NCBI GenBank assembly: GCA_907165135.1
Contig: OU015568.1
Coordinates: 9,672,001-9,736,000, forward strand
Direction of reading: 5' to 3'
DNA length: 64,000 nucleotides
From: Oikopleura dioica
Lineage: Eukaryota > Animalia > Chordata
How positions within the stretch are numbered: the stretch's first letter is position 1; every line of letters starts with the position of its first letter. This document shows, one piece after another, positions 11,500 through 16,372 of the stretch. A program made the position numbers and the translations under genes. The notes under the pieces were generated by a model, which worked only from the letters and a program-made list of their open reading frames with translations, was not told the DNA's origin and searched no databases.

Positions 11500-14033
11500 T
11501 ATTTATTCAATTTTCAAAACTCGGGCGATATTCTTCTTCCTCCGGAAGATCTTGGACGAAGAATGGGATTCTGAACTGACGAAGCGCGGAAATCATTTGA
11601 CGGTATTCTCAGCCTGACTTTTGAGTTTTCTCGCATCGCGCTAGAATCTTGTGAGCATTCATTGAAATGACCGAACTATACCTTGTTATTCCATGTTGGA
11701 TATAATCGTACATTTTCGCTTTGTCAGTCTTGTAAGTCTTCGCCATCGCTTCTATCGCATCCATCAGCTTCGGATCAGCACTAAAAGCGACTCAAAAAGG
11801 CGCATAAAGTCGACAACTCACCCTCTGTGAGACGTAGACAGCTGTTCTGCAAGATCTTCGATGATTTCTACGTTCAAGCTGCTCATGTCTGTCATCACCA
11901 TCGTTAGATTCGCCTCGGAAAGTCGCATCACACCACAAATCTTTTGCAAAACAGATATTTCTTGCGCTGCCTTCGTCTTCATATTTTTAGCTTGAATGTT
12001 TAAAGAAATGAAGATTCACTATTAAAAACATACCTGCTAGATCTGCAGATATTTTTTGACGCTCATTCTGAATTCTGAAGGTTTCCTCGAACTTAATTTG
12101 CTCAAGAGCAGAATCGCGCAGGACGCCATCAAATGAGATGTGGTCGACGTTGTCATCAAGAGAATCGATTCGCTTCGTCACCGAATCATCTTTTTTCGAA
12201 AACGATCGTTCTCGTTCTATATCTGCATGCTCTTCAATTCTAGCTTGCTCAGATTTCGAAGACTCGTAAAGGCGGACAATGTCGCTCGGTTCAACTCCTT
12301 TCAATCGGTTTTCAAATGCAGTAACAAAGAGAATCCCTTTCAGGTCAATAAGGGTCTAAAACATAAATACGCAAATGTTCTAAGATAGATTTTTACCTGA
12401 TAGATTTCCTTGTATTTTAAGACTTTCTCAAGTCCATTCACGCGTTCTTGCACTAGAATCTCGCCAAATATTTGAACAAAAAGCTGATCACTTCCTCTCG
12501 GATTGTTTTCGTTCTTAATCTCTTTGAGTTCTTCTGTAGTTTTTATAAAACAAGCCGTCCATTTTTCTTCGTAGTCAACGAGGCGATCAGAATAGGACCT
12601 GTCACGAACGATGTTTTCGAATTCTTGGTGGTAAGAAACAATGAAATTTGATGATGTTTCTGCAAATTTTTTCGTGCTACTTTCATCTTCCAGTCGCTCT
12701 TGCAGTTCTCTTTGAAAGGAATAGTTGACTGCATAGTAATCTATGTTTATACCTTTTTTGTTCTTTAGAAAGTGTAAGTTCTAAGAGCGACCTATTGAGT
12801 TTCTTCGCTTTTGGCCTTGAAGACTTTGAGCTCTTTGTGTTTCTTCGAAGCGATTCATCGAGAGAATCTTTCGTGTCTCTGTTTCGTCGATTTTCTGATT
12901 CATCGACAAAATCTTGAAGCTTTCGGAGTTTCTGGCGGTCCATTTTCAAGTCCGACAAGTAGTTTTGAAACACTAAAAATTTTTATTTCAATGTCATCTT
13001 TTTATTCACCTGAGCAAATTCTATTAGCCATTTGAGCTTCAATGTTCGCCACATCTTTCAGAAGCTTCGACGCACTCTGAAGATCAAAGTCCGCTAGAAT
13101 ATCCAAAAACTCGCTCAAGTCAATGTTTTTCAAGTTCTTTCTCGCCAGAAGATCGGCGATAAACTCTCGTTTTGCTTTTTTGAAATCAACAACGATTTCG
13201 TTTTCATGATCGTCAAGAGCATCGTCCAACAAGTTGTTGAATTCGTCGCGAATTTGTAGAATTTCGCCGAGAACAGAATTCAGCATTTCCTTTTTTCGAT
13301 TTTGGGGAATTTTTATTTCTGTTGCAATCGAATCTAGATCACTTTCGATCTTTTCTTTCGCCGTGTTCCAGTCGGACTTTCTTTGCTGCCAGCGATAAAC
13401 CCATATTTTCGCAAGAGCCAAACGGTTTTTCAGAATTTTTTCGATTCTAGCTTTATATTTCGATAACTCATCGGAAAAGAGATGCTCAGCATCTCGCAAA
13501 AGCTTGTATTTAATTTCTCCAGTCATGTAGCCGAGATCAAGCTGTGAAGCGAGTCGCGCGAGTTTGAGTCTTTGGACATTTTCAGACGTATCTTCGAGAT
13601 CTTTGAACGCTTGAAAAATGTCTGAATAGAGGTGTTCCTCGGATCTTTTGATTTCGTCGAATTCGCAGTTGTGCGCGCTCTTCAACTCATGATCGAATCG
13701 ATTTAGCTTGACCTCGAACTCTTTCCGCTGGTAAACATCGTTCAGAAACTCAAGTAGATCGCGTCGGATGTGTAAGCCACTTTCCCAAGTCTTGAATGGT
13801 ATCAGCGGCGTCGATTGAAACAAGTGCCCGGCGAGAATGATCTCGTCATCGTGAAACTCATTTGGAGAAAAATCTGGCTGGATGGAATTCGGGTCTAGTT
13901 TAGATGTGTTTTTGACGCTTTGAGGGGGCTGTTGGATTGTCTTAATTCAGTAAATTAAGTTGTTTGTCTCTGATCCATTTCTTGCCTGCTTTGGTTGAGC
14001 TACATTCGCGCTTCTTGAGCTGTTGCAGCCCAT
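11500..14033 (-). CDS. Long coiled-coil protein with N-terminal MGCNSSR acylation signal
   Basis: ATG at 14033 (MGCNSSRSANVAQPKQ); 45-nt GC-AG intron 13941-13985 joins in frame to ORF 13002-13823; further E/K/L-rich exons at 12683-12973 and 11987-12304. The 3' end is approximate. Confidence 0.7.
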
Positions 14034-14367
14034 TTTTCTCTTGGAAAAATTTAAAAACGGAAATAGTAAAAACGCGTATTCACGCGCAAAGGTGAATTTG
14101 GGGTGTCATTTAAATTTAACAACACAATTGACAGTGAGATGAAAGAAAATGCTGAGTTCCGTGGTTATGACAACCACCTGAGGCTCCAGCCAAAAGTTAA
14201 ACATTGATAGTGAGACATCAATGAGTCCTTAAGTTTATGAGCCAATATCAGAAAGATTGGACCTTCTCTGATAGACTATCAGTGATAGAATCTCTGAAAT
14301 ATGAACTGTATAAGTAAAATAGACTGTACAAATTTATTGTCTCTTATGCGGAGAATAATAATACTCT

Positions 14368-16372
14368 TTACAGTCGTTGGCGTAGATAGTTTCGTTCCTT
14401 TCTGACGAAGTTTTCACTTGTTCGGGAGACGCTAAGCTCGCATATTCATTTTCTAATCTTGCCAAACTTTCACGAGCAATAGAGAACTCGCCTTCTTCCA
14501 TACCTTCACCAACGAACCTTAGACGAATGTTAATTTGTTGGTATTAGTACTGATGAATTTACCAGTGAACAAATGCTCTCTTTGCATACATCAAATCAAA
14601 TTTTCGATTGACCATTTTAAATACTTCTACGATGTCAAGTCTATTTGTAACAGAGCAAACTGACGGATCAGAAGACTGCAGATCGTATGTTCTTGGAAGA
14701 GGTGGTGGTTGCGACTTCGAAGAGTTAAATGCAAGTGACTTTTATCGTAATTTTATTTTTGAACTCTTCCTGAATTCGAGCAGGATTCCAATTTGCAGAT
14801 TGAGTCCTATTTTGGCAAAAATTGAATTCTTTCTTCAGTTTCTGTATTGTTTTACTGATAGATTCGCTTCTTACATTTCCACGGTATAATAAAGAAGTGC
14901 TCAAAAATGGACCTTCTGACTTTTGATTACTTATCGAAATGAATTGATTCTAAAAAAAATAAAGATGCAAACACAAAATTATTCTTCTAACCTCAGACTT
15001 GAAGCAAAAACGACTCATCTCATGAATCGAATTGTTTTCTGCAGTATTCTGGCTTTCCGGAGAAATAAGAGGAGCACATGAATATGAAAGATAATTTATC
15101 CTTGGCTGCGGAACAAGACTGTTGATAACATTTGAAAAGTTTGCTATCGATGGATCTGTGAATCTTGTAGATGCTGTAATTGACGAAATCACCTTTCAAA
15201 CATGAAGAATATTTATGCTGAAAGAATGTTTTACCTGTGCAATAAGGCGGTTCGTATTATAAAAGCTCGGTATTTCTACGTCCAAATAATTCTGGCATAT
15301 TTTATATAAAGCTTGATTATCGAACATAATTGAACAGCTAGAAAGATTGCGTCCGTACTGTCTTCCAGCATACAGGAGGGCATTGTAAGGTTCGACCACA
15401 GAAGACGCAAATTTAGGCGAAATAAAAACCGGCACTTCCATAATCGGCACCTTAGTTTCCTTGATATATTCAAGGAGTAAGGCCGTCAAGCCAGAACCAG
15501 TTCCACCACCATGAGAATGATACACAATTATTCCTTGAAGGGCATCGCACTGTTCTTTGGCGCTTTCTACATTTTTCACCAGAGGCTCAATTATTTCCCT
15601 TCCAATCGTATAATGTCCTCTTCCATAGTTACTAGCAGAGTCTTCCTTGCCGTTTATCATGAGCCGTTGATTGTAAAGAGATCCGTAGATCGAGTTTTTG
15701 ACAGCATCAACGACATTCGGCTCTAAATCGGCCATGACTGCCCGTGGAACCGCTTTTCCAGTTGCTTCAGAGGGTTAAATTTGAACTGTTGATTATTCGT
15801 ACATTATATATACAGTGCATATTCAACAATTCCTGATTGATAGAAAAAGTCTCGTATGAGTTGTCAAAGGTCGAAAACGAGTCTTCAGGAATGGTTCCAT
15901 CAGGATTGATGCCATGTTCGTAGCAAAAAAGCTGCCAAGAAGCGGCGCCGATTTGAATTCCCGCCTGACCAACATGAATCGATAATATTTCTCGAGGACT
16001 TCTATCTACTCTTTCTCTTGCTCCAAGAGGAGGTGGAGTAATAGGTGGAGGGCTTGGACTTCGTGATCGTGGTGGTGGAGTCTTTGGTTTAGGCTTTGGT
16101 TTTTCTCGTCTAAGTTTTTGAAAAGATCTCTTTTGCATTTTCGCACAATTTACTGGGATGAATATTTTGCGCTTATTTGCGGAGGGAGCCGACTAATTAC
16201 CAACGATCGACATTTTGATTACCAATGTTCATTAATTTTAAGAAAGTCTAGTGATAAAAACTTTTCCTTGAGTTTTTGGTTTTTCTCGCTTATCTTCATC
16301 CTTATTGTTTGGCTTTTCAACAAGGTTATTTTTCTCTGGTTCAACTACATTTTTTGACTCCGAGCAGCCCAT
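14368..16372 (-). CDS. Divergent alpha-tubulin-like protein with acylated, Pro-rich N-terminal extension
   Basis: [78 protein letters not shown] and [11 protein letters not shown] match alpha-tubulin. Exon 16262-16372 (MGCSESK...) joins in frame via GT-AG intron 16193-16261. Splicing at about 14720-14830 is unresolved. Confidence 0.85.

Follow-up and report, generated by a model that had tools for sequence, protein, structure and literature searches.

The 64,000-nucleotide stretch of Oikopleura dioica contig OU015568.1 analyzed here (positions 9,672,001 to 9,736,000 of the forward strand; hereafter, the window) carries on its minus strand a gene for an alpha-like tubulin. Its six exons and their splice sites were joined from the three-frame translation, the list of open reading frames (ORFs), and splice motifs (Table 1). 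The joined exons contain no internal stop and encode a product of 525 amino acids (aa) in one model of the gene (i.e., model B) or 531 aa in another (i.e., model A). On the basis of its sequence, this product is a conserved chordate alpha-like tubulin that carries the substitutions D251N and E254N and a proline-rich N-terminal extension, has a rebuilt minus-end face, and lacks an acidic tail. The dynamics of microtubules stem from the hydrolysis of guanosine triphosphate (GTP) triggered by residue E254 of alpha-tubulin, and, to our knowledge, hydrolysis-dead lattices are known solely from nucleotide analogues and engineered E254 mutants. The gene is already in GenBank as an unnamed product, and we found no paper on it; our search of the literature on Oikopleura tubulin paralogues and on natural alpha-tubulins without the catalytic Glu yielded nothing specific.

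Searches were made with single exons or with intron-free orthologous ORFs, and the joined protein was used for translation, alignment, estimation of nonsynonymous to synonymous substitution ratios (dN/dS), and the tree. A word search with exon 2 recovered one close fragment (P0001; 69% identity) on an 8.5-kb metagenome contig (L001) that carries the entire gene. An exhaustive HMMER search with the intron-free piece of L001 added one family cluster at the 50%-identity level (P0121; 79% identity) on contig L003, and all other matches to this query were canonical alpha-tubulins with no more than 48% identity. From P0121, a word search led to CBY22337.1 (UniProt E4WY93), which the Bergen reference for O. 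dioica (L002) lists as an "unnamed protein product," and a scan of JGI metagenomes with family-specific T7 and M-loop patterns gave one further contig, L004 (99.7% identity to L001). These copies represent three lineages, i.e., that of the window, an Atlantic type (L001, L002, and L004), and L003. Relatives in other species, other larvaceans included, were found by neither the exhaustive HMMER search, the word search with exon 3, nor the JGI metagenome pattern scan, and the word search with exon 3 alone gave no candidates for small-ORF relatives.

Table 1. Positions in the window of the alpha-like tubulin gene and its elements
Feature	Position	Strand	Remarks
Alpha-like tubulin gene, full coding span	14334..16138	-	ATG at 16138, TAA end at 14334; open spliced frame
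Exon 1	15832..16138 (model B, end ...INQ + G); to 15814 with GT donor (model A)	-	N-terminal extension and S1-H1
N-terminal extension, 48 residues	15995..16138	-	14 P, 14 K/R, 5 S/T-P sites
T1 motif GQAG	15959-15970	-	In exon 1
Intron 1	Model B, 15765..15831; model A, 15765-15813	-	Model B, 67 nt, AA..AG (or GA..AA); model A, 49 nt, GT-AG; splice motifs, alignment
Exon 2, bulk of GTPase domain and start of H7	15235..15764	-	Alpha-tubulin chain matches, E 1e-48 to 1e-50; PF00091, 1.2e-35
T2 DLEP	15718-15729	-	Exon 2
T3 KEDSASNY (N101 = S)	15625-15648	-	Exon 2
T4 GGGTGSG	15490-15510	-	Exon 2
T5 loop	15382-15420	-	Exon 2
T6 DNQA	15310-15321	-	Exon 2
Intron 2, 42 nt, GT-AG	15193..15234	-	Missing from L001, L002, L003
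Exon 3: H7 end, T7 loop, H8, S7, M-loop, H9	14992..15192	-	Aligned to alpha 235-297; within ORF 14950-15192
T7 loop and H8 (alpha 243-261)	15109..15165	-	phmmer alignment, residue mapping
D246	15154-15156	-	Sole acidic residue in 243-261
I249 (N249I), codon ATA	15145-15147	-	Mapping on vertebrate alpha
N251 (D251N), codon AAC	15139-15141	-	Mapping on vertebrate alpha
N254 (E254N), codon AAT	15130-15132	-	Mapping on vertebrate alpha
M-loop region	15028..15063	-	One-residue insertion; tip variable among orthologues
Intron 3, 42 nt, GT-AG	14950..14991	-	Homologous 37-nt intron in L001
Exon 4, 60 aa: S8, H10, H10-S9 loop	14770..14949	-	2-aa and 5-aa insertions relative to alpha
Intron 4, 31 nt, non-canonical GA-AG	14739..14769	-	Frame hits stop if retained
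Exon 5: S9, S9-S10 loop with alpha-type insertion, S10, H11	14563..14738	-	Joined frame, alignment
Intron 5, 45 nt, GT-AG	14518..14562	-	Splice motifs
Exon 6: H12 and 33-residue non-acidic tail ending ...YYYSPHKRQ, stop	14334..14517	-	Joined frame

Alpha-tubulin identity and the T7-H8 segment

Exon 3 was run by phmmer against PDB chains, with residue numbers taken from a vertebrate alpha chain and checked at K40, GGGTGSG (142 to 148), N249, D251, and E254. Residues 2 to 65 of exon 3 align to residues 235 to 297 of alpha-tubulin; the alignment is gap-free from RF to LVP, and its sole gap is one residue in the M-loop. An earlier reading of this locus made without database searches (hereafter, the sequence-only reading) had claimed that the tubulin carries N249I, D251N, and E254N within 15095-15165 and that its GGGTGSG motif is intact. 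Both claims hold, the substitutions lying in a gap-free phmmer alignment to alpha 243 to 261 (15165-15109) and the motif at 15490-15510. No acidic residue falls at position 254 after proper alignment, and, because D246 is the only acidic residue at 243 to 261, both in the window and in each of the three orthologue lineages, no other register supplies D or E at this position. D246 itself is unlikely to be a replacement catalytic residue; it corresponds to the canonical D245, displaced by a single residue where T7 begins, and lies eight residues from 254.

The substitutions are shared by the whole family. All five copies (the window, L001, L002, L003, and L004) have N251 and N254, position 249 is I or S, and no D or E occurs at 247 to 261 in the orthologues. 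The T7-H8 segment reads RFTDPASANFNNIINSLVP in both L001 and L004 and RFNDPASANFNNIVNTLVP in L003, and the corresponding sequence of canonical O. dioica alpha-tubulin is RFDGALNVDLNEFQTNLVP. Across the four orthologues, 36 of the 67 columns of exon 3 are invariant. Among 247 alpha/beta-like proteins covering T7, the canonical residues are present in 202 (E254), 214 (D251), and 217 (N249), and the proteins with K254 are beta-tubulins. A change of this kind is beyond the level of chance. The top PDB matches to exon 3 include the engineered E254N human chains 7sja_A and 9f3h_A.

Sequence comparisons identify the gene product as an alpha-type tubulin. In HMMER/phmmer comparisons, the whole model scored 395 bits against O. 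dioica alpha-tubulin and 382 bits against vertebrate alpha-tubulin (235 and 193 bits, respectively, against beta-tubulin), and the PDB, the word search, and the exhaustive search of representatives all gave alpha-tubulins as best matches. Exon 1 matched the Pfam Tubulin profile at positions 1 to 29, exon 2 matched PF00091 (i.e., the tubulin GTPase domain; E, 1.2e-35), and the exon 4 piece alone matched Tubulin_C (1.2e-4). Matches of PF03953 (i.e., the C-terminal domain) to exons 3 and 4 as pieces were weak and below the cut-off, and the full Bergen orthologue (P0270) carries both PF00091 and PF03953 according to precomputed Pfam data. Hallmarks of alpha-tubulin are present, i.e., an H1-S2 loop that is gap-free relative to canonical O. 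dioica alpha-tubulin (model B), an S9-S10 insertion relative to beta-tubulin, and an identical GEGMEEGEF motif. For an AF2 model of residues 1 to 354 of the L003 orthologue (mean pLDDT, 79.8; about 95 in the GTPase domain), the best Foldseek matches were alpha chains (TMq, 0.74 to 0.77; E, 1e-30).

In a tree of 59 rows that contained no gamma, delta, or epsilon tubulins, the alpha/beta split places the family with the alpha-tubulins (SH-aLRT, 100%), in agreement with the sequence-only reading, which had taken the protein for an alpha-tubulin and proposed a tubulin phylogeny as a check. The stem of the family is long (0.87 changes per site), and the tree does not settle where the family belongs among the long-branch alpha-like sequences within alpha. 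This stem and position, together with the makeup of the tree, would be compatible with a non-alpha origin (gamma, delta, epsilon, or a cryptic class), where a missing E254 would be nothing unusual, but the uniformly alpha best matches, the canonical length of the H1-S2 loop, the alpha-type S9-S10 insertion, the GEGMEEGEF motif, and the score of 395 bits versus 235 bits for beta-tubulin make such an origin highly improbable.

The T7 loop, H8, H10, and S9 form the tubulin face that lies on the exchangeable nucleotide site of the adjoining beta-tubulin on the minus-end side, as assigned, like the other structural elements, from published structures. The identity of the window protein to vertebrate alpha-tubulin varies by region: it is 49% at residues 2 to 205, 58% in H7, 25% in T7-H8, 32% at 264 to 300, 27% at 301 to 381, and 67% in H11-H12, and the identities to the Bergen orthologue in the same regions are 72, 79, 80, 57, 54, and 72%, respectively. 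The T7-H8 segment thus has the lowest identity to alpha-tubulin and the highest identity within the family. That the least alpha-like region is nevertheless the best kept argues for a re-specialized surface rather than decay. By sequence, the minus-end-facing side is replaced by new family-conserved sequence without N249, D251, and E254, and the nucleotide side, which faces the plus end, is alpha-like (T1, T2, T4, T6, H7, and the H11-H12 loop with GEGMEEGEF). The AF2 model for L003 still shows, at moderate confidence, a loop leading into a helix at the positions of alpha 252 to 257.

Residues of the nucleotide site are largely retained (i.e., G10, Q11, D69, E71, D98, S140, GGGTGSG, E183, N206, and N228). 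The T4 signature [SAG]GGTG[SA]G is satisfied in the window (GGGTGSG), and L003 carries GGGTGAG. The Bergen reference copy reads GGGAGSG at about 3626-3646 of L002 (T145A) and breaks this pattern, which reflects either polymorphism or a reference error; the Thr at position 145 is retained in L001 and L004, which belong to the same lineage as the Bergen copy, and in L003 and the window.

Lateral elements and both termini have changed as well. The tip of the M-loop differs among the orthologues (QNTAE, TSKSD, and KTKSE), and H2-S3 lateral residues are altered. Small insertions follow S8 and also lie in the H10-S9 loop and at S9; the N-domain has a two-residue deletion and a two-residue insertion. 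The C-terminal tail of the window protein consists of 33 residues (5 acidic and 5 basic) that end in ...SPHKRQ, with neither an acidic tail nor a terminal Tyr. No conservation is seen in this tail, which ends in ...IRNGS in the Atlantic lineage; canonical O. dioica alpha-tubulin ends in ...GEEDEEEY. All orthologues carry an N-terminal extension of 48 to 56 aa that is rich in Pro, Lys/Arg, and S/T-P and is disordered in the AF2 model of the L003 orthologue (pLDDT, 35 to 61).

Selection and gene model

Three diverged O. dioica lineages have kept the tubulin gene intact, under purifying selection. By the Nei-Gojobori method (NG86), comparisons of the window with L001, L002, and L003 gave dN values of 0.22 to 0.25, saturated dS values (proportion of synonymous differences [pS], 0.68 to 0.74), and dN/dS ratios of about 0.07 to 0.13. 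For L001 versus L003, dN was 0.12 and dS was 0.81 (ratio, 0.15), and the close pair L001 and L002 differs by 21 synonymous and 25 nonsynonymous changes (ratio, 0.33). The ratio across isolates is accordingly 0.07 to 0.33 in all six pairs, which is not the neutral ratio that the sequence-only reading had named as the mark of a pseudogene.

A decaying or unexpressed pseudogene, or an artefact of annotation or assembly, would account for the T7 changes as neutral drift, and the lack of recovered RNA reads, the need for one or two non-canonical introns, and the partly wrong exon 1 of the deposited Bergen model are in its favor. Against these points, about 500 codons are open in four independent sequences from three lineages at a pS of 0.68 to 0.74 and a proportion of nonsynonymous differences (pN) of about 0.2, exons 1 to 3 of L003 form one unbroken ORF, T7-H8 is the best conserved block of the family, and GA-AG introns are normal in O. 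dioica. Since the four copies stay open after so much synonymous change, a pseudogene is excluded, and the introns show that the gene is not a retrocopy. We therefore regard the pseudogene or artefact explanation as very improbable and largely refuted.

The two gene models differ in intron 1. The GT-AG intron of 49 nt in model A inserts six extra residues in the H1-S2 loop, and exon 1 of model B aligns gap-free to canonical O. dioica alpha-tubulin through this loop. Model B also agrees with L003, in which intron 1 is absent and exons 1 to 3 are one continuous ORF. The homologous intron 1 contains no GT whatsoever in L001 (2056-2114) and L002 (3311-3369), where AA..AG (or GA..AA) is the sole in-frame solution. 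In the window, either the same odd junction (CAG G/aattg...ctgaag/CA) or a GT donor 18 nt downstream could be used. The deposited Bergen protein (CBY22337.1) is identical to our own L002 model from TGKAVPRAV to the end, and the part from exon 1 is mis-modelled. Its residues 71 to 87 (L002 3001-3369) are an out-of-frame stretch, LFELGQFIRNIFLYIT, in place of conserved sequence. The Bergen exon 1 looks like a gene-model error that resulted from the non-canonical intron 1.

A change of frame near 14740-14770 could be read as a frameshift or as a sign of a pseudogene. This reading is rejected; a 31-nt GA-AG intron repairs the frame, and the deposited Bergen coding sequence matches, likewise excising a 31-nt GA-AG intron at the same position. 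Such introns are common in O. dioica (PMC7072748). An in-frame acceptor at 14715 would give a 55-nt intron 4, which is possible and is kept as an alternative only; we prefer the 31-nt form because it matches the Bergen model and retains a strand-like S9.

Related tubulins and possible roles

Canonical alpha-tubulin of O. dioica (P0350 in the OKI2018_I69 annotation; P0352, i.e., Q7YZZ0) has the same fold as the paralogue and shares T1 GQAG, T2 DLEP, T4 GGGTGSG, T6 DN, H7, the length of the H1-S2 loop, the S9-S10 insertion, and a near-identical H11-H12 stretch (46% identity overall). The paralogue differs in having I/S249, N251, and N254, in the changes N101 to S/G and Y224 to F, in a T5, M-loop, and H10-S9 remodelled with small indels, in the N-terminal extension of 48 to 56 aa, and in the loss of the acidic tail and the terminal EEY.

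Beta-tubulin provides a natural non-catalytic face at the intradimer site, where its T7/H8 (K254) contacts GTP without activating hydrolysis because the acidic residue at 254 is missing, as it is in the Oikopleura protein. Beta-tubulin keeps N249 and D251 (RFPGQLNADLRK) and belongs to a different family, and the Oikopleura protein scores far better against alpha-tubulin. Among engineered human alpha-tubulins, E254A is reportedly a second hydrolysis-deficient variant beside E254N. These variants (PDB 7sja and related entries) provide the closest parallel for the change at 254, since E254N is common to the Oikopleura protein, in which the expected effect would be that the GTP of the beta-tubulin below is not hydrolyzed. 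They are otherwise wild type and polymerize normally, whereas the Oikopleura protein is natural, is known here from its sequence, is without D251 and N249 as well, and differs further in its rebuilt interface, lateral loops, and tail.

Within microtubules, it is E254 of alpha-tubulin that catalyzes hydrolysis of the GTP bound to the beta-tubulin below, and human E254N tubulin polymerizes, keeps GTP, and shows no catastrophes (PMC8764682). The suggestion of the sequence-only reading that the protein is "GAP-dead" (i.e., that it would no longer activate the GTPase of its neighbor) is thus a sound one, reached by analogy from real and fixed substitutions and from the finding that E254N alone abolishes hydrolysis (PMC8764682). 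The accompanying picture of point losses in an otherwise ordinary alpha-tubulin is not supported, because the minus-end face and lateral elements are rebuilt (25% identity in T7-H8 and 27% at 301 to 381).

Divergent isotypes are found in other phyla. The alpha-like and BLT tubulins of Tetrahymena are likewise extra isotypes with altered GTP-site and interface residues and no tail modification motifs, and they are thought to build or regulate special subsets of microtubules. They have an independent origin in another phylum, and BLT is beta-like; the likeness is drawn without the T7 of the alpha-like isotypes. The representatives surveyed include other uncharacterized alpha-like proteins without E254, among them trematode tubulins (Paragonimus KAF8569058.1 [P0253], Opisthorchis TGZ72185.1 [P0167], and Fasciolopsis KAA0189647.1 [P0384]) in which E254 is replaced by A, Q, and Q, respectively, and two of which also lack D251. 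The trematode proteins are apart from the Oikopleura clade in the tree, have other T7 sequences and no comparable N-terminal extension, and are annotated merely as "hypothetical protein" or "tubulin alpha chain." The survey suggests repeated origins, in animals, of alpha-like paralogues that lack E254 (i.e., in Oikopleura and trematodes) and that were overlooked as "hypothetical proteins."

We tentatively favor a functional, lineage-restricted alpha-tubulin paralogue that locks or ends protofilaments or has an otherwise specialized role through its new face. Because the conserved face is the plus-end one, the protein probably still binds GTP and pairs with beta-tubulin. The T7/H8 face would then lie over the exchangeable GTP of another beta-tubulin and would not trigger its hydrolysis. 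If the new minus-end face still docks on beta-GTP, the contact would remain in the GTP state; if it does not, the dimer could join only at minus ends and would block further addition there. Alternatively, the new face might dock on another partner. A cap exposed at the minus end would be one case of such a specialized subunit. The disordered N-terminal extension, rich in proline and S/T-P, might serve as a regulatory or docking tail.

Several points weigh against this proposal. N101, the T3 sensor, is replaced by S or G and Y224 by F, T5 has been remodelled (SPK[FY]ASS), and the Bergen T4 reads GGGAGSG; the nucleotide site may therefore have changed too. Beta-tubulin pairing, GTP binding, and polymer contacts are predicted solely from conservation, and the confidence of the AF2 model, which covers residues 1 to 354 of the L003 orthologue, is moderate in T7-H8 (pLDDT, 66 to 79). 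No RNA sequencing run was listed as carrying the window gene, and three bulk runs and one single-cell run searched at 88% likeness gave 2 to 56 reads per run, all partial, with no evidence of expression. Every placed read falls on the GEGMEEGEF stretch (14481-14518), and the sequence of the loose ends is that of canonical alpha-tubulin. The single-cell runs, at least, are apparently from Bergen-type culture animals, and the identity of the Bergen gene copy to the window DNA is about 70%, as estimated from pS and pN; for this reason, the negative RNA result says little. A separate observation is that reads of canonical alpha-tubulin paralogues cross-map to the GEGMEEGEF stretch at less than 90% likeness and could pass for expression of this gene.

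Two other roles were weighed. The protein could be a non-polymerizing member of the tubulin fold that binds or sequesters beta-tubulin or a cofactor, for example, or docks on a partner through T7-H8 and the proline-rich tail. This would suit a minus-end longitudinal face and lateral elements that have diverged from alpha-tubulin and yet carry conserved family-specific sequence, an S/T-P-rich disordered extension conserved in kind, and the disappearance of the tail used by motors, microtubule-associated proteins, and modifying enzymes. The H11-H12 loop and H12, which are important chiefly in the polymer and the dimer, are nevertheless 67% alpha-like with one stretch nearly identical, and no partner is known, so that we consider such a protein rather unlikely.

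An ordinary lattice subunit that co-polymerizes along the whole microtubule, rendering it GTP-locked and hyperstable, would be the natural counterpart of engineered E254N. Human E254N tubulin does polymerize, grow free of catastrophes, and keep GTP (PMC8764682), the H11-H12, H7, and GTPase regions are alpha-like, and the 80% conservation of T7-H8 in the family implies that this face is in use. A standard lattice position is argued against by the M-loop tip, which varies even between orthologues, the changed H2-S3 lateral residues, the insertions of 2 to 5 residues around H10-S9 (only 27% alpha identity at 301 to 381), and the absence of the acidic tail, and we judge a general lattice subunit to be quite unlikely. 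It is because the lateral elements and the tail are altered as well that a specialized locking or capping role is, tentatively, preferred to both.

The most specific form of the locking or capping proposal is a natural hydrolysis-dead alpha-tubulin (D251N and E254N), kept throughout the radiation of O. dioica cryptic species, that would place permanent GTP-state contacts or caps in particular microtubules and be switched by kinases via the N-terminal tail. This version is distinctly improbable in its entirety; if true, the genome would encode, in such contacts, a counterpart to the GTP cap or GTP islands. In a tractable chordate whose genome is tiny, an alpha-like tubulin in which natural selection has kept E254N and D251N would be open to study; it could show whether cells stabilize, cap, or mark microtubules with catalytically dead subunits, and might provide a ready-made protein for structures of the native GTP-state interface. 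If barely expressed or non-polymerizing, it would be merely another fast-evolving tubulin paralogue.

Intron variation and neighboring frames

The intron content of the tubulin gene varies between the O. dioica lineages. The window has introns 1 and 2 (15765-15831 and 15193-15234), the Atlantic lineage has intron 1 and not intron 2 (L001 2117-2845), and L003 has neither (95-1156). The 31-nt GA-AG intron (window 14739-14769; L002 4317-4347) has a 30-nt counterpart without AG within L001 3063-3125. This counterpart translates in frame and free of stops (EECPNFFQYM), and it could represent either a conversion of intron to coding sequence or the use of an acceptor 33 nt further downstream.

Ahead of the tubulin gene, a short upstream ORF (MGCS.SKN..VEPEK; window 16238-16372) is kept in the Atlantic lineage (L001 1500-1598; L002 about 2755-2853); it is in a separate frame and ends in a stop. 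The next downstream gene, also on the minus strand (13002-13823), has a long ORF, with 273 aa in one exon, of coiled-coil appearance.

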